Below are positions 4,419 to 20,254 of a DNA stretch of 64,000 bases, one piece after another. Numbering within the stretch: position 1 is the stretch's first letter; each line of letters starts with the position of its first letter. The notes below the pieces were generated by a model. The model did not search any database, was not told the DNA's origin, and saw nothing but the letters and a program-made list of their open reading frames with translations. The stretch lies in the sequence record PV029745.1. One strand, given 5' to 3'. The translations under genes and the position numbers were made by a program.

Positions 4419-6704
4419 ATGATTGAAACTATTATCAAACTGGATGGCACTGAACAACCCTTCGATAACGAGAAAGCAAATGGATGGGGCGAGTGGGCAG
4501 CGGCACGTCTGGGCAACAAAGTTGACTGGGGTAGTATCGTACTAGGTGCTGTAAGCGGTAAGCCCAAAAAGGTTACATCTCAGGAGTTCCAGGGTTGGCT
4601 GATCGAAGAATGTCTTAATCGTAAGACCTGGTCGTATTACCTAATGGCTGGTCGTCTGTACGCAGTATTTCTGCGTAAGAAAATCTATGGACTGGACGGT
4701 ATTCCGACAGTAAAACAACTTCATGCCAAAATGCATGAAGATGGAGTAATGATCAAACTGGATTATAGCGATGATGAATATCAGGCTATCCAGGAGATGA
4801 TTGATCATGATCTTGATTTCAATTCCCCTCATTTCGCTCTCCACCATATCCGTGGTAAGTATTCCCTTCGTAATCGCGTGTCTGGGAAAGAGTATGAAAC
4901 TCAGCAGTTTACATACATGCGGATGGCAATGGCTCTTTCTGAGAAAGAACCTAAAGCTGAGCGGCTGGAACATGTGAAGAACTATTATGAATTGTTCTCT
5001 CAAAAACAATTGTCGGCGCCGACTCCTAACTACGTTAACCTTGGTACTGTACTGCGGGGCTTTGCTTCTTGCTGCCTCTTCGCTTCTGGCGACAACGGTA
5101 CTTCGTTGGCTATCGGAGACTACATCGCGAACATCATGACCCAGTCTTCGGCTGGTATTGGTGTAAACATCATGTCCCGTTCTGTTGGGGATCCTGTACG
5201 TAACGGTCTCATCGTTCACCAAGGTAAGAAACCTTACATCGATGTAATGGGTAAGGCTGTTCGAGCTAACCTGCAAAATGGTCGTGGCGGTGCTGTAACT
5301 AGCTTCTATAGTCTCTTTGATCCAGAAGCTGATATGATTTCCCAACTCCGTAACCCTCGCTCTACCGAAGACCGTAAGAATCGTGATCTTCACTATGCAG
5401 CAATGGGTAACGTTCTGTTCGCAGCTAAAGCAGCTAAGAATGAAAAGGTGTTCGTATTTAACCCGTATACTGCTCCTGACCTGTTCGAAGCCTTTTACGG
5501 TAAAGACCAAGCTAAGTTCAAAGAGCTCTATGAAAAGTATGAAGCTGATCCGAACTTTGCTAAGACCTACATCGATGCACGGGATCTTCTAAAAACGGTT
5601 CTTAACGAAGCCTATGAAACCGGTGTTGCGTATACTGCTCAAATCGATGAAATGAATCGCCATACCCCGTTCAAAGAACCGATTCATAGTTCGAACCTCT
5701 GTATGGAAATTGCTGAACCGACAAAACCTTACTATGACATGCGTGACCTCTATTCTGAGGAAGACCATGGTCGAGGTGAGATTGCTACCTGTTCGCTGGC
5801 GGCTATTGTTGTTGACAATATCCCAGATGCAGCAACTTATCGTAAAGCTGCTTATTATGCGCTGAAGATGATTGACTACTGTATTCTCAATGCAGAATAC
5901 GCCTTCCCTCACCTGGGTTTCACTGCTAAGCAGCGTATGAGCGCTGGTGTCGGTATCATGGGTCTTGCTACCCATATGGCCCGTGCAGGTCTAGCATATT
6001 CTTCCGAAGCTGGTAAGCGTGAAATGCACTTTGTTGCAGAACGGCATATGTATCACCTGATCGAGGCTTCCCTGCGTATCTCTAAAGAACGTGGTCTTGC
6101 TCCATGGATGCATAAGACTCTGTGGCCTGAAGGTTGGCTGCCTCTTGATACCTACAAGCGAAATGTAGATGAAATCGTACCTGGTGGGTTTGAGAACATT
6201 TATAACTGGGAGAAACTCCGTAAGGAAATTATTGCTAACGGTGGTATCGGTCACTCGGTGCTCGTTGCATATATGCCTGGTGAAGCATCCTCTAAAGCAG
6301 TAGGCGGTGCTAACTCGATCTATCCGGTTCGTCGTCTTGTTATTAACAAGTCGGACAATAACAACCTGATTAACTGGGCTGCACCGTTTGGTGATGATAA
6401 AGCGTACAAGTATGAACTTGCTTACGATATTCCAACTAAGGATATGATCGAAGCTTACGCTATCTTCCAGAAGTGGACTGACCAAGGTATTTCTGCTGAC
6501 CTGTATCGTCGGATTATCGGCGACGAGAAGATTAGCTCTAACGAAATGCTTCGCGACTACTTCTTGCAGGTTAAGCTTGGTATGAAGACTCGATACTACA
6601 TGAACACCGAGACTTCCGCTAATCTGTCGCTTGCTGCATTAGAATCCGCGTTTGAAAATAACGATGGTTCCAAAGGTTGCGCTGGTGGAGCTTGTACTCT
6701 GTAA
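4419..6704 (+). CDS. nrdA: Ribonucleotide reductase class Ia alpha subunit
   Basis: ATP-cone-like N-terminus, SCCL, SSNLCMEI active site, C-terminal CAGGAC cysteine pair. Confidence 0.96.
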   Translation: MIETIIKLDGTEQPFDNEKANGWGEWAAARLGNKVDWGSIVLGAVSGKPKKVTSQEFQGWLIEECLNRKTWSYYLMAGRLYAVFLRKKIYGLDGIPTVKQLHAKMHEDGVMIKLDYSDDEYQAIQEMIDHDLDFNSPHFALHHIRGKYSLRNRVSGKEYETQQFTYMRMAMALSEKEPKAERLEHVKNYYELFSQKQLSAPTPNYVNLGTVLRGFASCCLFASGDNGTSLAIGDYIANIMTQSSAGIGVNIMSRSVGDPVRNGLIVHQGKKPYIDVMGKAVRANLQNGRGGAVTSFYSLFDPEADMISQLRNPRSTEDRKNRDLHYAAMGNVLFAAKAAKNEKVFVFNPYTAPDLFEAFYGKDQAKFKELYEKYEADPNFAKTYIDARDLLKTVLNEAYETGVAYTAQIDEMNRHTPFKEPIHSSNLCMEIAEPTKPYYDMRDLYSEEDHGRGEIATCSLAAIVVDNIPDAATYRKAAYYALKMIDYCILNAEYAFPHLGFTAKQRMSAGVGIMGLATHMARAGLAYSSEAGKREMHFVAERHMYHLIEASLRISKERGLAPWMHKTLWPEGWLPLDTYKRNVDEIVPGGFENIYNWEKLRKEIIANGGIGHSVLVAYMPGEASSKAVGGANSIYPVRRLVINKSDNNNLINWAAPFGDDKAYKYELAYDIPTKDMIEAYAIFQKWTDQGISADLYRRIIGDEKISSNEMLRDYFLQVKLGMKTRYYMNTETSANLSLAALESAFENNDGSKGCAGGACTL

Positions 6705-8461: not shown

Positions 8462-9190
8462 ATGCCTAACATTAACCTTTTGCTGCGATACGCGATATCA
8501 CTCGAAGCGGAAATGGATGACCTCATCAATCAGTTGTTTGATGAAGTTAACAATCCACGCGCGGATCGTCCTTACGATGTATGGGTAGAACCAGATACAG
8601 ATAACGTTATCCAACCACCAACCATAACTGAGCTTATTAATAATACGGACGATATGTGGACCTACTACAATCGCTCCGGAAGATCTAATGTAAAGAGTTA
8701 CAAATATGGTCCTGATTGGATGCTTGTAGAATTCGGTGGAGAGGTGTTTTATCTTTATACACTAAAAAGTATCACTGAAATACAACTACAGGACATGAAA
8801 TACTTCGCTGATGGCGGTGCTGGTTTGAACAGTTATATCAGCAAGGTTATCCGTGGTGGTTATGTAGCTAAAAATATTAATAATGAGATTATCCTAACTC
8901 CAGGTTTTGAAATGTATAAATCTGAAGGACCTATAATCTTCATTCATGTAAGAAACAAAAAAGAGGAAAAGAACATGTCTTCTCTTACTACCCTCACTGG
9001 ATATAAAGCTGCTATTGAAGCAGCAGGTATTGATGGACTTAGCCCAGACGCTCGCAAAGTGATGCAGATTGGACTAGCGCAAATTGATAAAGAACATAAT
9101 TTCACAAGTGTTTCTACTGAGAACTTCGATGAAGTAATAACTCTGGAAAATATCGAAGAGCGTATTGCTTTCGTTAGCGAAGAAGAATAA
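8462..9190 (+). CDS. Probable virion head protein with central KTSC-like domain
   Basis: Start chosen from AAGG SD. GRSNVKSY..G.DW..VEF...YLY...GAGLNSYI resembles KTSC-like domains; SLE/STE motifs present. Confidence 0.6.
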   Translation: MPNINLLLRYAISLEAEMDDLINQLFDEVNNPRADRPYDVWVEPDTDNVIQPPTITELINNTDDMWTYYNRSGRSNVKSYKYGPDWMLVEFGGEVFYLYTLKSITEIQLQDMKYFADGGAGLNSYISKVIRGGYVAKNINNEIILTPGFEMYKSEGPIIFIHVRNKKEEKNMSSLTTLTGYKAAIEAAGIDGLSPDARKVMQIGLAQIDKEHNFTSVSTENFDEVITLENIEERIAFVSEEE

Positions 9191-9350
9191 CTTACCAGCT
9201 ATGTAATGATATGTAGAGATGTCACTCCTCATCTTTACTAGGATCACAGCGCGCCGGAGCCAGCAACCCTTCCAGCTGGCTTCTAGGAAGTAAGACTCCC
9301 TGTTGTGATCCCCTCCTTTCAGTTGGTAAGTTGTATCTTTCTCCTTGTTG
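9191..9350 (+). ncRNA. Candidate structured ncRNA with anti-SD-like motifs
   Basis: ORF-free; nested helices 9191-9200/9321-9330, 9241-9250/9302-9311, 9256-9264/9275-9283; terminator at 9367. Confidence 0.5.
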
Positions 9351-9366
9351 TGTTGATGAGCATATC

Positions 9367-9389
9367 GCCTCCCACTGGGAGGCTTTATG
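9367..9389 (+). terminator. Intrinsic terminator
   Basis: GCCTCCC-act-GGGAGGC-TTTATG. Confidence 0.7.
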
Positions 9390-9429
9390 TTGAATAATAC
9401 TGAGGAGCCTCTATTTATAGAGAAGAAAT

Positions 9430-9515
9430 GCCCGGTTGGTGAAATTGGTAGTACACAAGAGACTTAAAATCTCTCGGCGAAAGCCGTGTCGGTTCGAGTC
9501 CGACACCGGGTACCA
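9430..9515 (+). tRNA. tRNA-Leu (anticodon TAA)
   Basis: GCCCGGT/ACCGGGT acceptor, AGAGA-CTTAAAA-TCTCT anticodon arm, long V arm, GGTTCGAGTCC, encoded CCA. Confidence 0.96.
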
Positions 9516-9521
9516 AATTTA

Positions 9522-9597
9522 CGGAGTGTAGCGCAGTTGGTAGCGCGCCTGCTTTGGGAGCAGGATGTCGGGAGTTCGAGTCTCTCCACTCCGACCA
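9522..9597 (+). tRNA. tRNA-Pro (anticodon TGG)
   Basis: CGGAGTG/CACTCCG acceptor, CCTGC-TTTGGGA-GCAGG, T loop, CCA. Confidence 0.96.
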
Positions 9598-9652
9598 TTT
9601 AAATATAAGCCCTCCGTTATGGAGGGTATTATATTGCATCGGGATAATAAAC

Positions 9653-9874
9653 ATGAACATCGCGACAATGTTTGTTCTGGCAATACATGTTGGCTGGTTT
9701 GGAATTACATCTACAAAAGAATCGACCATTCATTTTGAAAATAAAGAACAATGCATATCACACTTAGACATTTTGGAAAACAAATACCGTAGACACGAGA
9801 TACTACGAACGGATAACGTTTTGAAAGTTACTGATCATAACGAGCATTCTATTCTTATATTCAAATGTCTTTGA
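9653..9874 (+). CDS. Small hypothetical protein with hydrophobic N-terminus
   Basis: Start moved to the ATG downstream of tRNA-Pro and its terminator. Confidence 0.6.
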   Translation: MNIATMFVLAIHVGWFGITSTKESTIHFENKEQCISHLDILENKYRRHEILRTDNVLKVTDHNEHSILIFKCL

Positions 9875-9883
9875 GAGAAACGC

Positions 9884-10171
9884 ATGGAACACCAAGAACA
9901 AAAAGCGCTACTGAAAGAACCATTACAAAAACTTTATAATCTTACGTTTAACCCTCGTTTACGTAATGGAGCGAAAGCGCCCGATTGGATTCGTCTAACC
10001 GATGAAGTAGTCCTATTCCCAAATGGCTTAGATATTACAATCAACGCCATCACACGTTGTATCAAATGGGAACTTATTGAAGAGACTGTAAGTAATATCA
10101 CTTACGTTGAAGTCATGTTCTTTAATAAAGGTCTTAAAGCGATTGAGTCCTACCTCAAACATACGGAGTAA
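9884..10171 (+). CDS. Hypothetical protein
   Basis: 95 aa, GAGAG SD, co-oriented with neighbours. Confidence 0.7.
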   Translation: MEHQEQKALLKEPLQKLYNLTFNPRLRNGAKAPDWIRLTDEVVLFPNGLDITINAITRCIKWELIEETVSNITYVEVMFFNKGLKAIESYLKHTE

Positions 10172-10173
10172 AT

Positions 10174-10521
10174 ATGAATCATCTAACCCCAACACAAAAC
10201 GCTGTATATTTCACATTTGTTAGTCCTGAGTTTATGAAACTAACTCTTGTTGAATCTTTTGTAGCTATCCACAAGAAACATCCAGAAGTAAAACATTGCG
10301 TTAAGAAAAAGATTAGTGATAATGAAACTCAGTTTATCTTTATCTTCAAAGATGGAACTGACAATCTAATCATCACACGTAAGACCGAACCCTGTCCCGA
10401 ACTGGATAGTCCAGTAGGCGATAGAATTAAGTTGTCTGGTGAAGAACTTAAAAACATTCTCGCCAAGCATGGCCGCCCTAGTGACAGTAACTATTTTAAA
10501 CATTGGACAGATCGTCCATGA
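10174..10521 (+). CDS. Hypothetical protein
   Basis: 115 aa, GGAG SD inside the upstream gene end. Confidence 0.7.
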   Translation: MNHLTPTQNAVYFTFVSPEFMKLTLVESFVAIHKKHPEVKHCVKKKISDNETQFIFIFKDGTDNLIITRKTEPCPELDSPVGDRIKLSGEELKNILAKHGRPSDSNYFKHWTDRP

Positions 10522-10538
10522 TATTAAGAATACCCTAT

Positions 10539-10553
10539 GTATACTAATATGTA
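10539..10553 (+). promoter_or_regulatory. Putative phage promoter (TATG-type) for tRNA-Ile2
   Basis: GTATACTAATATGTA, 13 nt before the tRNA; similar motifs precede other tRNAs. Confidence 0.45.
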
Positions 10554-10565
10554 GGTAATGAATTA

Positions 10566-10642
10566 GGGCCTATAGCTCAGTTGGTTAGAGCAGGCGACTC
10601 ATAATCGCTTGGTCGCAGGTTCAAGTCCTGCTGGGCCCACCA
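10566..10642 (+). tRNA. tRNA with CAT anticodon, most likely tRNA-Ile2 (lysidine type)
   Basis: GGGCCTA/TGGGCCC acceptor; AGAGCAGGCGACTCATAATCGCTTGGTCG body resembles enterobacterial ileX rather than tRNA-Met. Confidence 0.9.
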
Positions 10643-10725
10643 AATTAATAAAGCATAATGCCTCCCCTATTTAAGGGGAGGCATTATGCTGTCTACGATA
10701 ATAAAATAAATATCTGAACCGCAAA

Positions 10726-10740
10726 GGTTATCCTATGATC
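10726..10740 (+). promoter_or_regulatory. Putative late promoter of Kelch gene 1
   Basis: GGTTATCCTATGATC; near-copy GGTTATCTTATGAATC at 12785-12800 before Kelch gene 2. Confidence 0.5.
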
Positions 10741-10767
10741 TAAAATGGTTTACTTGAGAGCACACTC

Positions 10768-11775
10768 ATGTTTGAATTACTATTATCACCAGATATAGGC
10801 GAAGAGTTACCCTTGGTTGGATTTAATGAAATTATTAAATTAGGTGATCTACCTGTAGCGTTAGCTGGTACAATGTCATATGTGGATGGAAATACACTGT
10901 ATGTTGGATCTGGTCATCATACTGAAGGACAAACAGCTGCAACTGTGTTCAGACGTTTTACCATATCGCCATTTGCCGATATAGGTGCAACTGCTTCTGG
11001 AACATTCTTACCAGGGGTATCTTTAGGATTTGGGACATTACATAAGAATAACTTTATTGTTTATGGCGGTATTACTGGATGGAACTCGGCTGGTAATGGT
11101 GGTACGGGAACATCTAACTTTATACAACATTTTGATATAGCTACAGGCAATAGGGTTGAGCGATATAGTGGTCCCGTACCACTTTGGGGCACAGCCTCCG
11201 CATCAGATGGTAATGATCTTATTCTATGCGTTAACCCAATTGGCGTAAACGCAATGCGATTAAAACCATCAAGTAAGTCTTGGCTTAGCGGGCAAGACTA
11301 TTCAGGTGGTGCTCGTTCAGGTCAACAGTTATTCTTTTATAATGGTTACTTTTACCATTTTGGTGGTTGGGATAATACAAAGAACATACCTAATCTTGAA
11401 GTTTATCGATATAATGCAACTACCTTAATATGGGAGCAAACACCTTGGATGATTATACCTGCTGATAAAGGAACAATCTGGCAAGGTAATGGTTATGTAG
11501 ATGGGGACTATTTTAATTACCTTAACGCTGTTGATGTCGGCGGTGTAACTAAAATGTTTGCACAGCGTTTTAATATTAGGCGCCGGAAATGGGCTGAACC
11601 ATTTGAACTAGGTATTGGATTCCTTAATATTTCATCTATAGCCAAAGGTCCAGATAATAGCATGATCATTGCAGGTGGATCTAAAATGCCAGTTGGTGGT
11701 GGAGCATATATGTTAAAAAGCCAATTGTTATCGGGTATCTATCAGGTAAAACTAGCACCATTAGCCATTGATTAA
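10768..11775 (+). CDS. Kelch-like beta-propeller protein 1
   Basis: Repeated blades with GG dipeptide and downstream Y/W (LYVGSG, FIVYGG, FYHFGG, MIIAGG). Confidence 0.75.
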   Translation: MFELLLSPDIGEELPLVGFNEIIKLGDLPVALAGTMSYVDGNTLYVGSGHHTEGQTAATVFRRFTISPFADIGATASGTFLPGVSLGFGTLHKNNFIVYGGITGWNSAGNGGTGTSNFIQHFDIATGNRVERYSGPVPLWGTASASDGNDLILCVNPIGVNAMRLKPSSKSWLSGQDYSGGARSGQQLFFYNGYFYHFGGWDNTKNIPNLEVYRYNATTLIWEQTPWMIIPADKGTIWQGNGYVDGDYFNYLNAVDVGGVTKMFAQRFNIRRRKWAEPFELGIGFLNISSIAKGPDNSMIIAGGSKMPVGGGAYMLKSQLLSGIYQVKLAPLAID

Positions 11776-11849
11776 AATAATAATATTTATAATAAGGTTA
11801 ACTACACGTTATTTACATAATGTCATAAAAAATAAATAATACTCAGATT

Positions 11850-11862
11850 GTAATAATATGTA
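11850..11862 (+). promoter_or_regulatory. Putative phage promoter for the tRNA-Asn locus
   Basis: GTAATAATATGTA; matches GTAATGATATGTA (9203) and GTAATACTATGTA (14699). Confidence 0.55.
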
Positions 11863-11924
11863 GTGAAATACTGTAATTCAGTTACTTGTGATTTTTCTAC
11901 AAGAAAGAAGTTGTTAGTAATTCT

Positions 11925-11951
11925 TCCGCGATAGCTCAGTCGGTAGAGCAA
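11925..11951 (+). pseudogene. 5' half of a split tRNA-Asn gene
   Basis: TCCGCGA-TAGCTCAGTCGGTAGAGC-AA: acceptor 5' strand plus D arm, complementary to TCGCGGA at 12731-12737; no anticodon arm follows. Confidence 0.85.
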
Positions 11952-11969
11952 GCGATTGGATAGTTTTCT

Positions 11970-12056
11970 TGGTAAGTACCCGAGCGGTAGCAGGGGGCGG
12001 ACTGTTAATCCGTTGGCGAAAGCCCATCGTAGGTTCGAATCCTACCTTACCAGCCA
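11970..12056 (+). tRNA. tRNA-Asn (anticodon GTT) with long variable arm
   Basis: TGGTAAG/CTTACCA acceptor, G73+CCA, GCGGA-CTGTTAA-TCCGT, V arm GGC-GAAA-GCC, GTAGG-TTCGAAT-CCTAC. Confidence 0.9.
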
Positions 12057-12061
12057 ATTTC

Positions 12062-12085
12062 AAAGAGTAGCTCCGGCTACTCTTT
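12062..12085 (+). terminator. Terminator-like hairpin after the inner tRNA-Asn
   Basis: AAAGAGTAGC-tccg-GCTACTCTTT; near-duplicate of the hairpin at 12751. Confidence 0.65.
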
Positions 12086-12137
12086 ATTCCGTCACATAGA
12101 TCGAACTAGCGATCTATTTATATATCCTAGGTTCGAT

Positions 12138-12695
12138 ATGAAAGAGAAAATAATTAACGGCTATAGGGCATTATATTTACCCGAACATCGTCAAGCCATA
12201 GCTAACCCTAAAATGTTTGGATGGGTTTACGAACATCGAGTGGTTGGAGAAGACACATTAGGTAGACCACTTTACGATGACGAGGAAGTTCATCATCTGG
12301 ATGAGAATAAGCTTAACAACCATCCAGAGAACTTATTGATTCTCCCTCAGTCACAACACATGAAGTTACATGGTTGGATGAAACGGCTCGGTATTGATCC
12401 TAGGAACTATCCAACTAAGCTTTGTGCTGGCTGCGGTATTGTCATTAGTCACCGACTGATAACATTCTGTAGCCCCGAGTGTTCAGCCAAAGGTCGTCGT
12501 AAGGTGGATCGACCATCCAAAGAACAACTTGCCCTCGATGTTACATTGCTATCACTTGTAAAAATAGGAGAGAAGTATGGAGTATCCGATAACGCTATTC
12601 GTAAATGGTGCCGAGCATACAAGATCAATATTCCGGCTAGGTTTATTAGGGTCGGTGCTAATGGGGGTATTAGCACCTTGGTCCCCACACAATAA
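12138..12695 (+). CDS. HNH homing endonuclease-like protein (HNH + Zn ribbon + HTH)
   Basis: YEHRVV...EEVHHLDENKLNNHPENL...HMKLH; CAGC...FCSPEC; KIGEKYGVSDNAIRKW helix-turn-helix. Confidence 0.9.
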   Translation: MKEKIINGYRALYLPEHRQAIANPKMFGWVYEHRVVGEDTLGRPLYDDEEVHHLDENKLNNHPENLLILPQSQHMKLHGWMKRLGIDPRNYPTKLCAGCGIVISHRLITFCSPECSAKGRRKVDRPSKEQLALDVTLLSLVKIGEKYGVSDNAIRKWCRAYKINIPARFIRVGANGGISTLVPTQ

Positions 12696-12707
12696 AAAAA
12701 AATATAC

Positions 12708-12741
12708 TGGGTCCCTGGTTCGAGTCCAGGTCGCGGAGCCA
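12708..12741 (+). pseudogene. 3' half of the split tRNA-Asn gene
   Basis: TGGGTC-CCTGG-TTCGAGT-CCAGG-TCGCGGA-G-CCA: variable loop, T arm, acceptor 3' strand. Confidence 0.85.
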
Positions 12742-12750
12742 AATTCAATT

Positions 12751-12776
12751 GAGTAGCCATTGGCTACTCTTTTATG
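12751..12776 (+). terminator. Intrinsic terminator
   Basis: GAGTAGCCA-t-TGGCTACTC-TTTTATG. Confidence 0.7.
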
Positions 12777-12825
12777 CCGTTAGTGGTTATCTTATGAATC
12801 ATTAATACTAACTGAGAGCACGCAC

Positions 12826-14682
12826 ATGTTCGAGATATTACTCAGTTCTGGTGCAATGGAGAGAGCTCCATATGTACCCTTTTATATGCGAACCAAGAAG
12901 GTAGCTGACCTTCCAGTGGGTATTGCAGGTCCAATCGTTGCAATGGATAACGATAACTTATATGTAGTTGGCGGTCAAGATTCTACTGGGGCTATCCGCT
13001 CTGCAACTGAAATATTTAAACTATCTGATATGTCGATGACTGTTGGTGGAAACCACGCTAGAACTATTTCCATCAATGGAGCAACTATTTATAATAATAG
13101 AATGCTAATACCAGGCGGCCAATTTTCTACTAATTTAGCTGGTCTTTTATCAACGACAGGTGCATTGAATTTACCTGGGTTAACTAGTGCAGTTGAGTTA
13201 ACGGGACGTTTACCACAGACGTCGTATGGGAATGCTGTATGTCAGCATAGAGGGGACATATATGTTTTACCCAGTTATAAAGCCGGATTCTATAAATTAA
13301 ATCCACTTACTGGCGCGACTCTTGAAAATTATCCAGGATTACCAAGTTTTGATGATGTCGGTGGTGGGATATTAGCAGGTATGTCAATTTTTGGACATGG
13401 AGATTATATCTATTGTTTGGGTGGATGGGCAAATAATCAGAACCTAAGAATACATCGATTTAATCTGATTTCCAAACAATGGGAATTATGGCAGACAATG
13501 GACCCTGCGTATCACCATGTATGGCATGGTGGTTTTATTGATGAGGAAGGTTACTATAACTATACCGGCTGGGGTAACCTCGGTCAAGGTAACAAAATAT
13601 ACCTCCATCGTTATAATCCAGTCAAAAAATCTTGGGCGCGCTCGTCGGATACCGGATTATCATATCGAAACATGTCGGGTGTTATTGGACTAAAAGATGA
13701 TATTTATATTGTCGGTGGTACATCTGAATCATTCTCTACTAATTGGACTAGCACAACAAATAAAATAAAAGAAATCTACAAGGTATCTCGTGCTCCCGAA
13801 AACTGGGAACCTGTCCCAGAGAAAACATGGGTAAGAAAAGCAGACATGCCTGGCGGTAGGGTGCAAGCAGCCGTAGCAAGTACTTATTCAGAACTGTTCG
13901 TTATGTTTGGTAGTGATGGTGCAGTAAAGAATACAAACTTGATTTACGATGTATTTACTGATACGTGGAAAGAAGGACCAGTTAAACCATCCGCACGTTA
14001 TCAATCGGCAGCCACAACTGTCGCCGACCAGATTCTTATTTTCTCTGGTAGTAACTATTCTCCAGACCTGTATTCTTATAACCATCTAGAAGACAAGTGG
14101 AGTGACAGTATATCTGAACCAAACGCACCCACATGGCGGACAAACCACTGCATGACATCTTTTGGTAGATATGCCTATCTTTTTGGTGATGATGGACGTA
14201 CCGATAGAGCTATTTATCGTTATAGTTTAGATGCTGCGGCTGGAAGCAAATGGTATAAATTACCTCAACTTGCTCCAGAAGGATTGGCTAGAGCGGCAAT
14301 GGTTATTGTGAATAATAAACTTTACATTGCCTGTGGTTGGATTAGTTCCAACACCATGACTAAAACCATTCGTGTTCTTGATTTGGTCGCTGGTACATGG
14401 TCTACCATATCTAACGTACCCGCCAGCTTTGTTGCTCGTGTAGGTTGTCTATTAGCTGCGATTGATAATAAACTTTACATAGGTGGTGGCGCTAGTCCAA
14501 GCACTGGATTGAATGATTTCTGGGAATATGATACAGTCAGTGGTGCGTGGACAAGACTCCCCGACATTCCTATAAACGGTGATGCTGCTATGATGGCTGC
14601 ATGTGCTGATACCTTATATATCGCTGGCGGTAATAGGCCAAACGGTGTGAAAGGTAATGAGCTCTACGCATATAGGCCATAA
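12826..14682 (+). CDS. Kelch-repeat protein 2 (probably two propellers)
   Basis: About 12 blades (LYVVGG, IYCLGG, IYIVGG, LYIACG, LYIGGG, LYIAGG) with W.....MP spacers. Confidence 0.88.
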   Translation: MFEILLSSGAMERAPYVPFYMRTKKVADLPVGIAGPIVAMDNDNLYVVGGQDSTGAIRSATEIFKLSDMSMTVGGNHARTISINGATIYNNRMLIPGGQFSTNLAGLLSTTGALNLPGLTSAVELTGRLPQTSYGNAVCQHRGDIYVLPSYKAGFYKLNPLTGATLENYPGLPSFDDVGGGILAGMSIFGHGDYIYCLGGWANNQNLRIHRFNLISKQWELWQTMDPAYHHVWHGGFIDEEGYYNYTGWGNLGQGNKIYLHRYNPVKKSWARSSDTGLSYRNMSGVIGLKDDIYIVGGTSESFSTNWTSTTNKIKEIYKVSRAPENWEPVPEKTWVRKADMPGGRVQAAVASTYSELFVMFGSDGAVKNTNLIYDVFTDTWKEGPVKPSARYQSAATTVADQILIFSGSNYSPDLYSYNHLEDKWSDSISEPNAPTWRTNHCMTSFGRYAYLFGDDGRTDRAIYRYSLDAAAGSKWYKLPQLAPEGLARAAMVIVNNKLYIACGWISSNTMTKTIRVLDLVAGTWSTISNVPASFVARVGCLLAAIDNKLYIGGGASPSTGLNDFWEYDTVSGAWTRLPDIPINGDAAMMAACADTLYIAGGNRPNGVKGNELYAYRP

Positions 14683-14698
14683 AAGAAATACCGGTATG

Positions 14699-14711
14699 GT
14701 AATACTATGTA
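14699..14711 (+). promoter_or_regulatory. Putative phage promoter for tRNA-Tyr
   Basis: GTAATACTATGTA, 17 nt before the tRNA. Confidence 0.55.
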
Positions 14712-14728
14712 AGACTATATCGGATTTC

Positions 14729-14817
14729 GGAGAGATAGGAAAATTGGTAACCCCAGCTGACTGTAAATCAGCCGTCCGTATCGGGCATTACTGGTTCGAG
14801 TCCAGTCCTCTCCACCA
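14729..14817 (+). tRNA. tRNA-Tyr (anticodon GTA)
   Basis: GCTGA-CTGTAAA-TCAGC, long V arm, ACTGG-TTCGAGT-CCAGT, CCA; one A-C mismatch at acceptor pair 7. Confidence 0.93.
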
Positions 14818-14829
14818 ATGCGTCATAGT

Positions 14830-14855
14830 GCTCTCCCTTCGGGGAGAGCTTTATG
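14830..14855 (+). terminator. Intrinsic terminator with UUCG loop
   Basis: GCTCTCCC-TTCG-GGGAGAGC-TTTATG. Confidence 0.8.
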
Positions 14856-14879
14856 TCAACTATTACAAAAGGAAATAGC

Positions 14880-15416
14880 ATGTCAGCATTAAGTTTGATT
14901 AAACGTTGGTCGCCCGCAGTACCTAAGATTCTATTGAGTCCACAGGACACGGTCAATGAGACTAAGATGGTCTTAGATAACGAGAGTGGAGAATATATAA
15001 AGTTTAATGACTTCTTGATCCTCCTTCAAAACGGCGTGTACCTAGAAGCCACCAAAGAGATGCACGAGACTTTGTTAGATGGTAAAGCACAGCAAAGTCT
15101 CATTGCTCGACTCAGTCGCATGGGTTATGAAGACTTTGATCAAGTAATGAAAGTCTTAGAAGAACAGCGTGATTCTGTACTTAAGAAGAAAGAATATGAA
15201 ATCTGGCAAGAAGGACATCGCGCTACTGGTGAATCTAGTATAGCCAGCTTTGTAGGTAAAGCTGAAGGTTATTCTTTCTTAGATGCTGTAGACAACTACA
15301 TGAAGACAGCTAGTGCGGAAGTTAAGAAATGTTTCCGTGCTGAACTAGATGCAGCTTATATTTGGGGCTGTCGTTTGTTTGACAATGAAGCCGACGCACG
15401 TAAATCTTTCGGGTGA
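14880..15416 (+). CDS. Hypothetical protein
   Basis: Start chosen from AAGGA SD; no motif recognised. Confidence 0.7.
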   Translation: MSALSLIKRWSPAVPKILLSPQDTVNETKMVLDNESGEYIKFNDFLILLQNGVYLEATKEMHETLLDGKAQQSLIARLSRMGYEDFDQVMKVLEEQRDSVLKKKEYEIWQEGHRATGESSIASFVGKAEGYSFLDAVDNYMKTASAEVKKCFRAELDAAYIWGCRLFDNEADARKSFG

Positions 15417-15419
15417 CTT

Positions 15420-15590
15420 ATGGTTCCTAATCTTTCTATAAAAGCAATTCATGCTCGTCAAACTCCAGAACAACTTGCTGGCAACCGAGAGAAAACTCTT
15501 GAGGCCCTGGCTAAGTTCAACCAGGCTCAACGTAAACTTGAAGAGCATTGCAAACGCAATGGACTTGAAGTACCAATTATGGTTTGTTAA
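15420..15590 (+). CDS. Small hypothetical protein (56 aa, not in the ORF track)
   Basis: MVPNLSIKAIHARQTPEQLAG...PIMVC; starts 3 nt after the upstream stop. Confidence 0.55.
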   Translation: MVPNLSIKAIHARQTPEQLAGNREKTLEALAKFNQAQRKLEEHCKRNGLEVPIMVC

Positions 15591-15592
15591 TA

Positions 15593-15739
15593 ATGACTGA
15601 TGACAAAAAAGAAAAACAGCATAAAGGGCGACAAGCCCTCAATGTAGTTGGTGAAATCATTGGTGCTGTGTTCGAAGCTATTTGGTGGGTCTTGACCTGC
15701 CCGTTCCGTTTAATCGGTGTACTCTGTACGCTTGATTAA
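15593..15739 (+). CDS. Small membrane protein (48 aa, not in the ORF track)
   Basis: MTDDKKEKQHK then hydrophobic IIGAVFEAIWWVLTCPFRLIGVL; TAATAATG coupling. Confidence 0.55.
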   Translation: MTDDKKEKQHKGRQALNVVGEIIGAVFEAIWWVLTCPFRLIGVLCTLD

Positions 15740-15767
15740 AATAATACCTAGTTGATTACAATATGTA

Positions 15768-16010
15768 ACGAACAAAGTTACTTCATCGAAAGCTACCTGT
15801 AGAAACATCTCACATTAGGTCCAGCAGACTGTAGTATTTCGATGTGACCATTTATAGCACCCGGAAACCAAAGGCTAATAGTGGCAAGCCGATGATTGAG
15901 GGAAGTCGAATGGGCCGCCCATACCGAAAGGTGTCTCTTCAGTTCCACTAACTGTCACCTCACGATGGACATTACGATCAAAAAGAGACTGGTTTTAATG
16001 TCCGATATAC
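15768..16010 (+). ncRNA. Candidate structured ncRNA
   Basis: Follows an AATATGTA motif and ends at a terminator; several helices and a possible pseudoknot. Confidence 0.45.
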
Positions 16011-16011
16011 G

Positions 16012-16036
16012 ACTCTCCGATAAGGAGAGTTTTATG
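16012..16036 (+). terminator. Intrinsic terminator
   Basis: ACTCTCC-gataa-GGAGAGT-TTTATG. Confidence 0.7.
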
Positions 16037-16089
16037 TCGTTTTATACTGGGCTATATAACAGTATGTCAAAGGATGTAAAGAGGTAATC

Positions 16090-16380
16090 ATGACAGCTTT
16101 CATGCCATGTCATACTGAGGCTGATATAGACCTAGCTTCAAGAAATAAAATGTTGTCAGAGCTACTTATAGAAGAATTCCCAAATACAGAAGGGATGTCA
16201 ACTAAAGCAGCAGAAGACTATCTACGGTCTAAGGTCATAGATAAATTCAATATTAACCATCCCGAATATCAAGCACATGTAAGTTACGATTGTACTACAC
16301 GTGGAGATTTCATTACGGCTTGGGTAACTCGAAGACTTGCCCTTGTAAAACTTGCTATAACTACAGAGGATCAATCATGA
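16090..16380 (+). CDS. Hypothetical protein
   Basis: GAGG SD, 96 aa. Confidence 0.7.
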   Translation: MTAFMPCHTEADIDLASRNKMLSELLIEEFPNTEGMSTKAAEDYLRSKVIDKFNINHPEYQAHVSYDCTTRGDFITAWVTRRLALVKLAITTEDQS

Positions 16381-16592
16381 ACGAAAACGCACTGTACCAA
16401 GACGATGGACTTGGCGCACTCATTACGGAAATTTTTAGTCGGGATCTGAATAAGAAATTTCAAGAATGGTATCGTCCGATTATGGATGACCCCAGCATTG
16501 AAAAGGTACCCGTTTGTAGAAACGGTCAGGTTGTAAAAGAACCCGTTAATTTTGTAGCCCTTTTGAAAGAATGGTTAGCTAATCAAGATTAA
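16377..16592 (+). CDS. Hypothetical protein
   Basis: ATGA overlap with the upstream stop, GAGG SD. Confidence 0.65.
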   Translation: MNENALYQDDGLGALITEIFSRDLNKKFQEWYRPIMDDPSIEKVPVCRNGQVVKEPVNFVALLKEWLANQD

Positions 16593-16652
16593 AAACATAA
16601 AGCCTCCCTTCGGGGAGGTTATATGTTATGATTTTGACGAAAGGTAATCGTT

Positions 16653-17591
16653 ATGTTTGAAGTTTTGTTAGGAATTGGGGAATATAAAAGTAAGCAAGGT
16701 TGGGTTCAGCTACAGGGACCCGATGTCGGAAGAAATCAGTCAACATCTGTTGTTGTAGGAGACAAACTTTATATCTTCGGTGGACGCCGTGCCACCACTA
16801 ATGCGTTTAACACGGTATCCGTCTATGACTTCATAGCAGACGAATGGAAAGAACTACCAGCTGGAGCGAACGTTAACCTACGTGCTGCTGGTGGTTTAGT
16901 TGGTAATAAATTTTACGTATTCGGTGGATATACAGGTTCCGCTGATACGAATACAATGGTAGAGTTTACTATTGATGGCGAAACTATCACCCCTGTAACT
17001 CGATCCAATGGTGGATTGGCTGTTCGTAATAGCCACTGCATGTCGGCTATTGATAATAAAGTGTATCTGTTTGGTGGGAACGGTGCACAGGGTATTATGT
17101 ATGAATTTAAAAGCTACAATACCGATAACTTTACAGTAGCTAATCTAACACCACCATACCAAATCCGTTATGCGTCTCTAACTAGTCATGATCGCCGTCT
17201 TTACACGCTCGGTGGATATGAAACCGCTAACACATCAGTTGCCTCATTTAGAAGTTATAATGTTGACAACAACACATGGACTGCCCACAAGAATGGTCTT
17301 GTAAATAGAAATAGACATTCTGCCGTAGCTCTTAATAATAAGATCTATGTATTCGGTGGTCAATCTGGTACGAGCTCTACTCCAAACACTATTAACAACG
17401 ATCATATTTTCAGTGTCTATGATATTGAAACCGATACATGGTCAAACATAATACTTCCTCCGGGTAAGATGCCCCCTACTAGATTCTATGCTAATATGGA
17501 AGTCTACGACGGTAAGATTTATTTATCTGGTGGTTACACGAATGGTGTGTACCACAATGATCTATGGGTATACGATCCAGAGAATCCATGA
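16653..17591 (+). CDS. Kelch-repeat protein 3 (single propeller)
   Basis: LYIFGG, FYVFGG, VYLFGG, LYTLGG, IYVFGG, IYLSGG: six canonical Kelch blades. Confidence 0.92.
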   Translation: MFEVLLGIGEYKSKQGWVQLQGPDVGRNQSTSVVVGDKLYIFGGRRATTNAFNTVSVYDFIADEWKELPAGANVNLRAAGGLVGNKFYVFGGYTGSADTNTMVEFTIDGETITPVTRSNGGLAVRNSHCMSAIDNKVYLFGGNGAQGIMYEFKSYNTDNFTVANLTPPYQIRYASLTSHDRRLYTLGGYETANTSVASFRSYNVDNNTWTAHKNGLVNRNRHSAVALNNKIYVFGGQSGTSSTPNTINNDHIFSVYDIETDTWSNIILPPGKMPPTRFYANMEVYDGKIYLSGGYTNGVYHNDLWVYDPENP

Positions 17592-17648
17592 AAACAAATA
17601 CTGGCGTAGTGATTATATGTAAGGATTAGCGTTAAGCATATTCTACAT

Positions 17649-17734
17649 GGGAACATAGGCGAATTGGTATAGCCAGCTGGTTTAGGTCCAGCCGTCGTAA
17701 GACACTGTGGGTTCGAGTCCCTCTGTTCCTACCA
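17649..17734 (+). tRNA. tRNA-Leu (anticodon TAG)
   Basis: GGGAACA/TGTTCCT acceptor, GCTGG-TTTAGGT-CCAGC, long V arm, T loop, CCA. Confidence 0.92.
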
Positions 17735-17743
17735 TTTCAATAG

Positions 17744-17768
17744 AGCCTGCCGAAAGGCGGGCTTTATG
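17744..17768 (+). terminator. Intrinsic terminator
   Basis: AGCCTGCC-GAAA-GGCGGGCT-TTATG. Confidence 0.75.
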
Positions 17769-17899
17769 TTGCAAATTGTATGATTTAGTCTTTTGGTAAG
17801 TACCTTTAATGGGGGAGGCCTTAGACGGTAAGGGAGTAGGAACGTGAAGTTCTATACAGTCACCCCTCTGTAAACAGTCACTTTTCAATGGATAAAATT

Positions 17900-19468
17900 A
17901 TGTTTGAATCGTTGTTGTCAGTACTCATTAAGGTAACAGAAAATAAATTACCCGGTCCCTCTACCTTTGAATACGGTGATTCGACACTTGGTCTGTATGG
18001 TGAGTTAGCAAGTGATAAGTTTATAACTTACCCTCAGTTAAGAACACTTGTTGAACTCGATTCCATTGGTAGCATAAATACCGATGCCGGCTGGATTAAG
18101 GTATCTAGGAATAATGTTGTCATGTATTATTCAAAGACAGCTATTCTCCGATCCATTAGTCCAAACCAACTTGATACCGCTGGTTTAATAGATGGTAGTA
18201 AAGTTATTGTAATTGACGGAAATATGTTTAAAGTCCGTCTTATGAATGCAGGTGAAAATCCTTATTCTGATATTACTACCCAAGGTAATGAAGGTTCCGA
18301 GTTATGGGATATTTTTGGTAACGTTACAACCAAAGGAAGCTGGGCGAAATATACAGATTCTCAACTTATAGGTGCTGAAGGCGGTAGTTATAGCTGGGCG
18401 GCTAATAGAAATACAAATGGTAATTATCTACAGTTCTCGCCTTCGTCTACTCATCCCCAGGCAAAGAATGGAGTTTATGTTTACGACGGACACCCACCGA
18501 CGGAAGCTACTAATTATAGAGGATGGCGTCCAGTACTAGAATATATTCCACCTAAGGAACTTAAAGGTTTATCGTCTGTACTATCGACAGTAAATCCACC
18601 ACCACAACGTGGGATGCCAGTGCTTGCATATGACTCGGATAACAATGATATCTATATGGCTTGTGGATATACAACTGGACCAACTGCTTTCATGTCCGAC
18701 CTACATCGATTAGACATGGATACAAAAACATGGACTAAGTTACCATCGGTTGTGCCATTCCAAGGTGAAACCACTACCACGAATATGGTTTACAGTAACG
18801 GTAAATTAATTCTTCATGGTAACCCATTGTCAACTGGGCCAACTATTTATATTTACACCATAGCTACTGATACCTGGGAAACTAAAAAGCTCGCGGCTAT
18901 TCCAGGTTTGGTTGACGCTTACTACATCGAACGTACAGCCAGTATAGTTAAAGATGACATACTCTATATTGTCGGTGGTTTCTCTGGTCGAAACGATAAG
19001 ATCCATAAGAGTATTATAACGGTTGATCTAACCTCCTACTCAATCGATCTTATTGAAAATATTCTACCATTTGAGGCTTGGCATCACGATCTTGGATTTA
19101 ATGATAATAACGAATTAGTTATTGTTGCATCTCAAGGTAGATTATCTATTGGTGGAACAAATATCACACCAACGGACTATATAAAAATTAGTCCCGATTT
19201 TAGTGCCGCTGAGACCATCCCTTTAAATGCACCGGCTAATAAGTATTCGACGTATAGGTCTATTGTTTTCGGCAACAATATCTATATTACGAATAATACT
19301 ACAACACAGTTAGCATTGGTACAACTTAATAAAGAACCAGAGCTAATCGGAGATCCTTTCCCTACAATTAGGTCGTATGAAGAAATGGTGATTACATCAG
19401 CTGGTGTATATAGATTCAGCGGTGATGTTTCTAAAACAGCACCTGTAGTCGAATACGAAATTAAATAA
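17900..19468 (+). CDS. phiKZ gp131-like virion structural domain fused to a Kelch-like propeller
   Basis: Starts MFESLLS; PGP...GDSTLGLYGEL...GWIK...FKVRLM...GWRPVLE domain, then IYMACG / LYIVGG blades. Confidence 0.75.
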   Translation: MFESLLSVLIKVTENKLPGPSTFEYGDSTLGLYGELASDKFITYPQLRTLVELDSIGSINTDAGWIKVSRNNVVMYYSKTAILRSISPNQLDTAGLIDGSKVIVIDGNMFKVRLMNAGENPYSDITTQGNEGSELWDIFGNVTTKGSWAKYTDSQLIGAEGGSYSWAANRNTNGNYLQFSPSSTHPQAKNGVYVYDGHPPTEATNYRGWRPVLEYIPPKELKGLSSVLSTVNPPPQRGMPVLAYDSDNNDIYMACGYTTGPTAFMSDLHRLDMDTKTWTKLPSVVPFQGETTTTNMVYSNGKLILHGNPLSTGPTIYIYTIATDTWETKKLAAIPGLVDAYYIERTASIVKDDILYIVGGFSGRNDKIHKSIITVDLTSYSIDLIENILPFEAWHHDLGFNDNNELVIVASQGRLSIGGTNITPTDYIKISPDFSAAETIPLNAPANKYSTYRSIVFGNNIYITNNTTTQLALVQLNKEPELIGDPFPTIRSYEEMVITSAGVYRFSGDVSKTAPVVEYEIK

Positions 19469-19507
19469 TACTTCGTGTCTAATAGTATACGAGAGTATTC
19501 AATTTTC

Positions 19508-19585
<78 letters not shown>

Positions 19586-19605
19586 GTTTAAGTAGTTTAA
19601 AATTA

Positions 19606-19682
19606 GGCTCCATAGTTCAGTTGGTTAGAATGCTTGCCTGTCACGCAAGAGGTCGCCGGTTCAAGTCCGGCTGGAGTCGCCA
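19606..19682 (+). tRNA. tRNA-Asp (anticodon GTC)
   Basis: GGCTCCA/TGGAGTC acceptor, CTTGC-CTGTCAC-GCAAG, G73+CCA. Confidence 0.96.
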
Positions 19683-19690
19683 AACATAAC

Positions 19691-19715
19691 AAGGAATCTT
19701 CGGATTCCTTTTATG
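19691..19715 (+). terminator. Intrinsic terminator with UUCG loop
   Basis: AAGGAATC-TTCG-GATTCCTT-TTATG. Confidence 0.8.
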
Positions 19716-19776
19716 CCGTAACATGAATATACTGAAAGACCAGATCCTATGGTTAAACATTATCTAGGGTAAAGAC

Positions 19777-19962
19777 GTGTCACTAAAAGCTTTGCAGGGT
19801 ATAGCTAGTAGTGTTCCTACAAATGAACAAAAGGAACGATTGGCTAAAGTTCGAGAAACAATGGAAGAGCTAAACGAATCTATTAAAAGACAAATTCGGA
19901 ATAGAAAGCCAAGCGCTACTCTTCTCAACAAAACAGTAAACTGGGGAAACAAATATGACTAA
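19777..19962 (+). CDS. Small coiled-coil hypothetical protein
   Basis: GTG start; overlaps the next gene. Confidence 0.55.
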   Translation: MSLKALQGIASSVPTNEQKERLAKVRETMEELNESIKRQIRNRKPSATLLNKTVNWGNKYD

Positions 19963-20254
19963 GACTCTGGTTCGTGCTAAACTGATTACGGAAACAGGTG
20001 CTTGGATGTCTTCTGATTGGGGGAGTGGATTTATCGCTAGTCGGTTTGTTAAGACGAGTGGAGATACCATTACTCCTAACGAATTCGAGTCTCTGATCAC
20101 TGACTTTGAAGTTGGCAATATGCTCGTTGTATGGCCTAACGGATTGAGAACTTCTTATAAAACAGAAAGCTTTGATAAGAACTTTACACACGTGAAGGAC
20201 GAGTATTATCAAACTGATTTGCGTCCATTGTTCTATACAGGGAGTAAACAGTAA
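19955..20254 (+). CDS. Hypothetical protein
   Basis: GGGGA SD; TAATG coupling to the next gene. Confidence 0.7.
   Translation: MTKTLVRAKLITETGAWMSSDWGSGFIASRFVKTSGDTITPNEFESLITDFEVGNMLVVWPNGLRTSYKTESFDKNFTHVKDEYYQTDLRPLFYTGSKQ

Follow-up and report, generated by a model that had tools for sequence, protein, structure and literature searches.

Why does a tRNA gene in a phage genome lie in two pieces, with a complete tRNA gene of the same specificity and a nuclease gene between them? The question is raised by positions 11925 to 12776 of a 64,000-nucleotide (nt) stretch of record PV029745.1, the whole of which is referred to here as the window. An initial annotation, made from the sequence without database searches, had described a tRNA-Asn gene split by an HNH-endonuclease cassette that carries its own replacement tRNA-Asn. 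The window belongs to Pseudomonas phage phiHQ (PV029745), with a 100% match at equal coordinates (blastn, query 11700-12900). phiHQ is a PA1C-group, phiKZ-related Pseudomonas jumbo phage with a genome of about 300 kilobases (kb). The locus lies within a phage tRNA cluster in which ARAGORN detects eight tRNAs (9430-19682), just one of them a tRNA-Asn. The arrangement is probably a free-standing HNH homing-endonuclease cassette that interrupts a host-type tRNA-Asn gene within its anticodon loop and supplies a replacement tRNA. It would represent a new and apparently undescribed variant of free-standing endonuclease homing, in which a selfish nuclease element brings a substitute for the gene that it destroys. 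No description of a split tRNA-Asn or of a long-armed phage tRNA-Asn was found in the searchable full-text literature.

The interrupted tRNA-Asn gene and its insert

The cassette opens with a leader of 9-12 nt, followed by a complete tRNA-Asn whose variable arm is long, two terminator hairpins and the HNH gene. The features of the locus are given below with the evidence for each in brackets; site A and site B are the two tRNA-Asn loci of phiKZ-like phages.

11795-11924, + strand: upstream non-coding region, probable promoter or leader of the interrupted tRNA gene and now of the inner tRNA (homology to site B)
11925-11958, + strand: 5' remnant of a Pseudomonas-type tRNA-Asn, extending from the acceptor strand through the D arm and the anticodon stem's 5' strand to loop bases 32-34 (aligned against PA1C, phiKZ, Churi and Psa21)
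11959-11969, + strand: degenerate junction, also the inner tRNA's leader (GATAGTTTTCT); its phiKZ homologue is TTACGATTTCAT (alignment)
11970-12056, + strand: inner tRNA-Asn(GTT), 87 nt, with GAAA-capped long variable arm, U1-A72, G73 and encoded CCA (ARAGORN; Rfam tRNA, 54.2 bits)
12062-12090, + strand: terminator hairpin 1 with T-run (folding; conserved, with a compensatory stem in Psa21)
12096-12126, + strand: hairpin 2 with T-rich tail, 5' of the HNH start (terminator-like match and folding; conserved in phiKZ)
12138-12695, + strand: HNH endonuclease of 185 amino acids, with N-terminal HNH_3 domain, CxxC...CxxC zinc ribbon and C-terminal helix-turn-helix, VSDNAIRKWC (Pfam, PHROG)
12708-12741, + strand: 3' remnant of the Pseudomonas-type tRNA-Asn, comprising variable loop, T arm, acceptor strand, G73 and CCA (identity to chromosomal tRNA-Asn)
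12751-12775, + strand: terminator of the original tRNA-Asn gene, of the site A type, followed by a Kelch-repeat gene at 12826 (terminator scan, folding)

The outer pieces are TCCGCGATAGCTCAGTCGGTAGAGCAA, starting at 11925, and TGGGTCCCTGGTTCGAGTCCAGGTCGCGGAGCCA at 12708-12741. Their acceptor strands pair 7/7, and a blind scan for T arms outside the annotated tRNAs recovers the arm at 12714, again pairing 7/7 with the acceptor strand at 11925, so that the two halves originally reported are found independently. A search pattern made of the two outer pieces, with the anticodon stem left open, matched at least 120 stretches, and 80 of these loci were tabulated. Among the matches listed, the stretches are chromosomal tRNA-Asn genes of Pseudomonas and close relatives. 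The anticodon arm is ATGA-CTGTTAA-TCAT in 77 of the 80 tabulated loci, and the gene reads TCCGCGATAGCTCAGTCGGTAGAGCAAATGACTGTTAATCATTGGGTCCCTGGTTCGAGTCCAGGTCGCGGAGCCA. Because the outer pieces are identical to the chromosomal genes at all 27 + 33 flanking positions required by the pattern, they are the ends of a host-type tRNA-Asn and not a chance resemblance, which confirms the identity proposed in the initial annotation. Between the halves, ARAGORN, Rfam, folding and Pfam/PHROG likewise recover the complete tRNA-Asn(GTT), the terminator and the ORF (open reading frame) with HNH, zinc-ribbon and helix-turn-helix parts.

The boundaries of the damage differ from those first given, according to which the 5' half ended at 11951 and only the anticodon arm was missing. 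The half in fact continues past 11951: AGCGA (11951-11955) forms the 5' strand of the anticodon stem, and three bases of the loop extend the half to about 11958. The rest of the anticodon loop and the 3' strand of the stem are missing from the outer tRNA of the window. The 3' end of the insert has lost about 33 nt in the window, AATCAC among them, that phiKZ retains, and the loop is scrambled (AGCGATTG-GATAGTTTTCT versus AATGACTGTTACGATTTCAT). A proposed insertion scar, AGAGCAA[TCGCCTGTTAA]GCGATTGG with a duplicated TGG, is wrong by alignment with phiKZ, PA1C and Churi, because the anticodon-stem strand formed by GCGAT is the 5' one, not the 3' one.

The hairpin that follows the outer 3' half (12751-12769; -12.6 kcal/mol, z = -4.3) is a near copy, by paralogy, of the hairpin that follows the inner tRNA (12062-12085; -15 kcal/mol, z = -6.7), a duplication noticed earlier and now upheld by folding and comparison. 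The former is also homologous to the terminator 3' of the intact tRNA-Asn of phiKZ. The second hairpin of the insert (12096-12126) folds at -8.8 kcal/mol (z = -3.6). On the upstream side, 11795-11924 is homologous to sequence 5' of the intact tRNA-Asn of Churi and of the split tRNA-Asn of phiKZ. It contains a single sigma-70-like match, of weak consensus only, at 11812-11840, and presumably provides the promoter. Damage to the outer halves has arisen separately in each lineage: in phiKZ the anticodon stem contains an A-C mismatch and a conserved purine of the T loop has changed from G to T, and the outer half of Churi has G34T in the anticodon. Such tRNA halves are unannotated, and the label 'tRNA-Asn x2' applied to phiKZ conceals two very different genes.

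The inner tRNA folds into a cloverleaf with a variable arm of 3 base pairs capped by GAAA (ARAGORN). It had been called simply an unrelated tRNA-Asn; it is instead a member of a phage-borne tRNA-Asn family, because near-identical anticodon, variable and T arms occur in the 80-85-nt tRNA-Asn of VSe12 (T5-like), Stubb (Novosibvirus) and CHI14 (T4-like). Alignment with Psa21 reveals two compensatory T-stem pairs and one variable-stem pair, and the metagenomic relative L216 has a compensatory acceptor pair. In Pseudomonas aeruginosa, Asn-tRNA is made indirectly through an aspartyl-tRNA synthetase (AspRS) of the non-discriminating type together with GatCAB, for which U1-A72 is a positive determinant (PMC2330236, PMC9976931), and the determinants of aminoacylation are the anticodon and G73 (PMC9976931). 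The inner tRNA has the corresponding identity elements, namely the cloverleaf, GUU, G73 and the U1-A72 pair suited to a GatCAB host. Within the long-arm family, members from enterobacterial phages have G1-C72 and those from Pseudomonas phages U1-A72. The compensatory changes and the match to the GatCAB determinant are together the signature of a tRNA that is likely to be working, under selection and adapted to a Pseudomonas host. Such a host-adapted family may help to explain unusual phage isoacceptors.

In the window the inner tRNA is the sole tRNA-Asn (ARAGORN), and blastn gives one matching place in phiHQ; because of these two results it is judged to be a replacement and not an extra copy in the phiHQ lineage. 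The GAAA-capped long-arm tRNA-Asn(GTT) family is widespread in phages at lengths of 80-87 nt (L006 1480-1559; L007 1500-1584; L008 1475-1555; window 11970-12056). A strict pattern of the inner tRNA had no match in metagenomes, and a looser pattern gave two unrelated arrays. In the Psa21-like contig L214 (reverse complement, 5962-6090) a long tRNA-Asn with U1-A72 is free-standing and followed by the same terminator. In L216 (reverse complement, 482-569) a long tRNA-Asn, likewise with U1-A72, is followed some 200 nt on by a different HNH_3-like ORF (about 770 onward). The rule that a 5' half invariably accompanies the long tRNA holds in 22 of 22 phiKZ/PA1C-type GenBank records and in Psa21, and was discarded since L214, L216 and L217 contradict it.

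Alleles of the locus and relatives of the nuclease

Two loci for tRNA-Asn occur in phiKZ-like phages: site A, between tRNA-Asp and the gp298 gene, and site B, which follows gp297. Their states were surveyed by four flank-specific megablast searches over all deposited phiKZ-like relatives. Alignment with relatives, proposed earlier as a way to find the intact allele, yields it at both loci: sites A and B of PhiPizzaParty are both occupied by an ordinary tRNA-Asn of 76 nt, Churi has an intact copy at site B and phiKZ at site A. At site B of phiKZ, upstream of gp296, the cassette sits cleanly in the anticodon loop at 36/37-37/38, in the order ...CTGTTA (GCAAATGACTGTTA) / CGATTTCAT + long tRNA + terminator + gp296 (HNH) + ...AAACAT / AATCACTGGG (AATCACTGGGTCC). 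Site A of Churi holds an allele, termed A-long, in which the 5' half and the cassette junction are followed by the long tRNA and then the terminator of site A; the HNH gene and a 3' half are both missing. Psa21 retains a D-arm remnant upstream and has no downstream half. The PA1C-type allele is chimeric, with a site-B-like 5' flank and a site-A-like 3' flank, and has decayed further. The arrangement in PA1C, BRkr and phiLBG22 is the same decayed one as in phiHQ. Identity to window positions 11700-12900 (blastn) is 99.3% for phiLBG22, 97.3% for PA1C, 94.5% for BRkr, about 83% for the phiKZ-type phages and 68% over part of the query for Psa21. The deposited records are distributed over the allele states as follows.

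Site A, intact tRNA-Asn: about 31 records
Site A, A-long: 8 records
Site B, intact tRNA-Asn: 23 records
Site B, with cassette: 10 records
PA1C-type: 4 records

The insert is thus absent from otherwise near-identical relatives that have an intact tRNA-Asn at the same place, and with flanks 97-100% identical the presence/absence polymorphism and its empty site are confirmed. The same cassette junction occurs at two distinct tRNA-Asn loci. A tRNA gene that remained split in relatives lacking the HNH gene had been considered a sign against homing. Most relatives without the HNH gene have an intact tRNA-Asn, and the eight HNH-less genomes with a broken one are cassette derivatives, since all of them retain the exact 5' junction of the cassette.

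Two further phages depart from these states. In phage 124.01, which is of phiKZ type and has the HNH gene, the tRNA-Asp, tRNA-Asn and terminator of site A are precisely deleted, leaving CATACGTTT / CTTTTATG (L213 3030-3175, minus strand), and the same deletion boundary recurs in 2PS and at the record start of 14Ps5-6. The A-long alleles with their cassette junction and the deletion in 124.01 hint that site A may be attacked as well. Both tRNA-Asn copies of PaZh_1 lack an identical 31 nt covering the T arm and acceptor strand (L012 280-360, 2375-2455). These deletions were considered as scars of escape from the nuclease and set aside, as they are likelier to be an assembly artefact of k = 31 in a record marked UNVERIFIED.

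The ORF at 12138-12695 matches PF13392 HNH_3 (E = 1.3e-10, above the curated cut-off) and phrog_15471, 'HNH endonuclease' (E = 5.5e-53). The HNH_3 domain spans residues 31-75, with H53 invariant among the aligned relatives, and the helix-turn-helix motif (G)VSDNAIRKWC is near-invariant across relatives even though their N-terminal halves differ widely. A sequence search of the PDB with the protein found no chain at E <= 1. An AlphaFold model (predicted local distance difference test, pLDDT, 83) has I-HmuI as its top PDB fold match, which is only a lead because the match is not significant (Foldseek E = 0.4, template modelling score, TM, 0.30).

Comparison of the window with phiKZ gives a ratio of nonsynonymous to synonymous divergence (dN/dS) of 0.046-0.056 at dS 1.1-1.3. 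At these values the gene is under strong purifying selection and has been kept functional for a long time, a retention that exceeds the prediction of the classical invade-and-decay cycle. The idea that the PA1C and phiKZ lineages exchanged the cassette recently was rejected on a dS of 1.28. In the literature phiKZ gp296 figures solely as a non-core 'HNH nuclease' whose knock-down has a weak phenotype, and its absence from Churi has been noted. The ATG annotated as the start of the HNH gene is, in every phiKZ-type record, off frame by one A, within an A-run, from the conserved N-terminal 24 residues (L001 3804-3880, gp296 start), and these 24 codons stay in frame upstream to a TGA. The configuration suggests slippage or a non-ATG start, with low expression, for phiKZ gp296.

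Relatives of the HNH protein lie in same-strand tRNA arrays at 78 of 80 IMG/VR loci. At least ten distinct tRNA genes (including Lys, Pro, Thr, Leu, Cys and Phe) carry an ORF of this family inside the anticodon loop, and in these ORF-split tRNAs the acceptor strands pair 7/7 across the ORF and the anticodon stem 5/5 around the insert. The closest homologue outside Pseudomonas (L015, 43% identity) splits tRNA-Lys(UUU) at 36/37. An Rfam E-value scan of ten metagenomic loci found no ribozyme. To judge from these contexts, targeting of tRNA genes at the anticodon loop is a property of the HNH family. Because the family inserts in anticodon loops, the enzyme of the window would once have cut, or would still cut, tRNA-Asn; this is the main argument for such an activity, and an indirect one.

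Several members of the family have features of their own. The tRNA-Pro(UGG) gene is split at 36/37 by HNH ORFs in L037 (1937-2813), L051 (1893-2813) and L064 (1937-2837). In these split genes the untranslated ends of the ORF form a long terminal helix that covaries between loci (TTTATTA/TAATAAA versus CTATTAA/TTAATAG). Bacillus phage PBC2 (L010 1261-2016) has a 39%-identical HNH homologue beside tRNA-Asp and tRNA-Asn, on the strand opposite to the tRNAs. The idea that a long variable arm acts as a protective ruler against the HNH family in general is weakened by a class II tRNA-Leu (L078) that has an insert in its anticodon loop.

Some otherwise perfect tRNAs of the arrays have anticodon-loop inserts other than an ORF, each a tRNA or an acceptor/T-arm minihelix of 44-75 nt. 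A whole tRNA-Asp is nested inside a tRNA-Asn in L015 (1241-1390), and minihelices of 44-63 nt that end in NCCA occupy the loop in L091 (1908-2026) and L064 (980-1116). HNH ORFs framed by minihelix ends are present in L013 (465-1138), L015 (2418-3092) and L042 (2064-2846). In the nested elements of L013, L015, L042, L064 and L091, in which no ribozyme was detected, the first base (+1) of the inner element follows directly on the outer 5' exon, and its CCA directly precedes the outer 3' exon. With this geometry, RNase P and 3' tRNA-processing enzymes could excise the insert, and excision would leave exon ends with a 3'-OH and a 5'-phosphate that an Rnl1-type RNA ligase could seal. No description of nested tRNAs in phages was found in the searchable full-text literature, and the observation may outweigh the main finding.

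Proposed homing cycle and competing explanations

The proposed history begins with a plausible ancestor composed of a free-standing long tRNA-Asn, a terminator and an HNH gene (compare L214 and L216). A break in the anticodon loop of an ordinary tRNA-Asn would have captured this segment, giving a cassette flanked by two halves that could thereafter act as homology arms for converting any intact tRNA-Asn gene. In a mixed infection, we infer, the HNH protein nicks or cuts the intact tRNA-Asn gene near the anticodon loop, and repair would then copy the cassette across, using the tRNA halves as homology arms. The interrupted target could no longer be cut. The resident upstream promoter would transcribe the 5' remnant together with the inner tRNA, which RNase P would free at its 5' end and for which the encoded CCA and the terminator would set the 3' end. 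Recognized through GUU, G73 and U1-A72 by the non-discriminating AspRS and GatCAB of Pseudomonas, the inner tRNA would decode AAC and AAU in place of the outer one. It may escape the HNH protein as it has just 11 nt (GACTGTTAATC) in common with the target and its long arm shifts the T arm by about 10 base pairs. An HNH-less allele with 5' half, long tRNA and terminator could arise by conversion, by template switching or by deletion between the GCCAA-TTC-hairpin repeats, and would be nuclease-free, target-free and resistant. Repeated cutting and repair would leave the shared junction at sites A and B, the chimeric flanks of the PA1C type, the A-long alleles and the loss of site A in 124.01.

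Several results weigh against this account. Six phiKZ-type genomes have an intact site A tRNA-Asn alongside the HNH gene, contrary to a simple model in which every intact copy is cut; site A may be a poor substrate, expression may be very low or conversion may be rare. The level or activity of the HNH protein in the phiKZ-type lineage is uncertain because the annotated ATG is out of frame. The cassette is old, with a dS of 1.28 for the HNH gene against phiKZ compared with 0.73 and 0.075 for neighboring genes, and for this reason vertical descent and ordinary recombination could explain part of the distribution. The metagenomic Psa21-like contig L214 has the long tRNA with no 5' half and no HNH gene. 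Finally, the tRNA scan covers the 64-kb window of a 300-kb genome, and the single-copy state beyond it rests on one blastn result.

A possible but unlikely alternative is that one illegitimate insertion was spread and lost by ordinary recombination, with the HNH protein doing another job (for example in competition, attack on host DNA or packaging) and the long tRNA serving as useful cargo, for instance as a tRNA resistant to a host anticodon nuclease. One founding event would be enough, given the single 5' junction common to all cassette copies, and the antiquity of the cassette and the coexistence of the HNH gene with an intact tRNA-Asn in phiKZ agree with it. So does the occurrence of the long tRNA with no adjacent HNH gene in L214 and in T5-like and T4-like phages, and the targets of phiKZ nucleases are reported to be largely unknown (PMC12571901). 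The presence of the same junction at two tRNA-Asn loci argues otherwise, as does its single occurrence with a chimeric flank (site-B 5' and site-A 3' in the window). The binding of the family to tRNA arrays and its anticodon-loop insertions in many tRNAs are hard to explain without targeting of tRNA genes, and the HNH gene is under strong purifying selection while its sole conserved context is this insertion.

The nested elements admit a broader and distinctly improbable reading. The HNH family with its near-invariant zinc-ribbon/helix-turn-helix tail might mark a new kind of intervening element, a protein-only tRNA splicing in bacteriophages. The cassette of phiKZ and PA1C would then be a derivative in which the nested tRNA has become a full replacement and splicing has been abandoned.

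That the insert is an intron, with the outer tRNA-Asn transcribed across it, spliced and functional (by self-splicing, by a bulge-helix-bulge mechanism or by excision of a nested tRNA and ligation), is very improbable. The insert of phiKZ lies exactly in the anticodon loop (36/37-37/38) between nearly complete halves, and relatives of the HNH gene occupy the anticodon loops of perfectly preserved tRNA halves, some framed by minihelix ends that abut the exons. Rfam, however, finds only tRNAs at E <= 1 in window positions 9000-20500 and at E <= 0.1 in the phiKZ, Psa21 and Churi loci. The phiKZ junctions (...CTGTTA/CGATT and ...AACAT/AATCAC) have no U at the 5' splice site and no G ending the insert, and two terminator hairpins separate the halves. 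With terminators within the insert and no detectable ribozyme, the outer gene is taken to be a pseudogene and not an intron-bearing gene. The state of the exons speaks the same way: the window, PA1C and BRkr have lost the 3' strand of the anticodon stem and have a scrambled loop, the halves of phiKZ carry the stem mismatch and the T-loop change, and the 3' half is wholly absent from Psa21 and from site A of Churi. The claim that the cassette replaces the tRNA function and does not splice out is accordingly supported in its structural part by the intact alleles, the clean insert of phiKZ, the lack of a group I intron, the terminators and the lost stem strand.

It is hardly conceivable that the halves form a split tRNA, transcribed separately and assembled in trans as in Nanoarchaeum. 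In its favor, the acceptor strands do pair 7/7, and even Psa21 has kept the D arm of the 5' half, a conservation equally explained by a homology arm that is refreshed at each conversion. There are no complementary leader and trailer sequences to join the halves, no terminal pairing of the insert ends in phiKZ and no evident promoter for the 3' half, which follows directly on the HNH stop codon; the anticodon-stem 3' strand and part of the loop are absent from the window, and bacteria lack the required splicing endonuclease. An assembly artefact, which the initial annotation had raised and for which it can be said that repeated tRNA-like sequence may mislead assemblers and that the twin 31-nt deletions of PaZh_1 look k-mer-made, has a negligible probability, as four PA1C-type genomes, each sequenced independently, have the structure and ten phiKZ-type records, among them the Sanger genome of 2002, have it in a cleaner form.

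If the homing cassette with a replacement tRNA is the right description, the isolates have caught its cycle in four states, namely empty, filled, decayed and converted to a resistant allele that lacks the nuclease. The function of an invaded gene would be kept in a third way, by a spare gene, besides splicing and split-protein reassembly. One nuclease of phiKZ, the model nucleus-forming jumbo phage, would also gain a concrete candidate target.

Known systems and further observations

Free-standing endonuclease genes are known to split phage genes, as does mobE in nrdA of Aeromonas phage Aeh1, and in collaborative homing such an endonuclease acts with an endonuclease-less intron. The phiHQ cassette resembles both in that its insertion into an essential gene would disrupt its own target and thereby immunize the carrier, while a second travelling or adjacent component would keep the function. 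In those systems function is maintained by reassembly of two polypeptides or by RNA splicing, whereas in phiHQ the broken gene would be abandoned and a whole replacement supplied. Group I introns of bacterial tRNAs share the anticodon-loop position; the phiHQ insert differs from them in its lack of a ribozyme core and splice-site signature, its internal terminators and its decayed exons. I-HmuI, the nicking enzyme of SPO1, is alike in being of the HNH_3 class with an N-terminal HNH domain and a C-terminal helix-turn-helix, but it is encoded by an intron in a DNA polymerase gene and the phiHQ protein has an extra CxxC...CxxC zinc ribbon.

Within the same phage group, gp210 of PhiPA3 is an HNH homing endonuclease encoded by an intron, which nicks the intron-less allele and the phiKZ homologue and takes part in competition between co-infecting jumbo phages (PMC11620839). 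It resides in a self-splicing group I intron of an RNA polymerase gene, while the phiHQ element has no ribozyme, a presumed tRNA target and compensation by replacement. T4 SegB, the experimental precedent for a free-standing endonuclease within a tRNA cluster, drives the preferential inheritance of the T4 tRNA region with co-conversion of its flanks, and the HNH proteins F-TflI, F-TflII as well as F-TflIV are encoded in the tRNA cluster of T5 (PMC2330249). Like these, the phiHQ nuclease is encoded by a stand-alone gene among tRNA genes that is missing from close relatives. SegB, which belongs to another nuclease family (GIY-YIG), sits between genes, and T4 is simply without the targeted tRNA-Asn; the phiHQ cassette lies inside tRNA-Asn, is flanked by both halves of the target and carries a structurally different isoacceptor that would restore the function.

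The cassette is bracketed by two paralogous Kelch-repeat proteins (10768-11775 and 12826-14682), both of which begin MFE(L/I)LLS and are homologues of the phiKZ virion protein gp298. The first (10768-11775) is 98% identical to gp298 with a dS of 0.075, and the adjacent gp299 has a dS of 0.73, a contrast that indicates probable local mosaicism or recent exchange. PA1C and BRkr have an additional ORF of 218 amino acids, with no assigned function, between the terminator of the outer tRNA and the second Kelch gene (L002 2836-3492; L003 2570-3226). The two copies are quite divergent, and the ORF is missing from phiHQ near 12776-12800.

In Psa21, 600 nt with no annotated gene lie between tRNA-Pro and the cassette (L005 1936-2540). 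The stretch contains tRNA-like fragments such as GCCCACCTAGCTTAATCGGTAAAGCGC and has no Rfam match at E <= 0.1. Other RNAs also occur in phage tRNA arrays, among them a twister-P1-like match (46 bits, below threshold; L035 903-954) and YrlA-like matches (below threshold; L015 616-725 and L035 4121-4226). A full-length ROOL RNA (320 bits) is present in a metagenomic phage tRNA array (L051 3379-3968).

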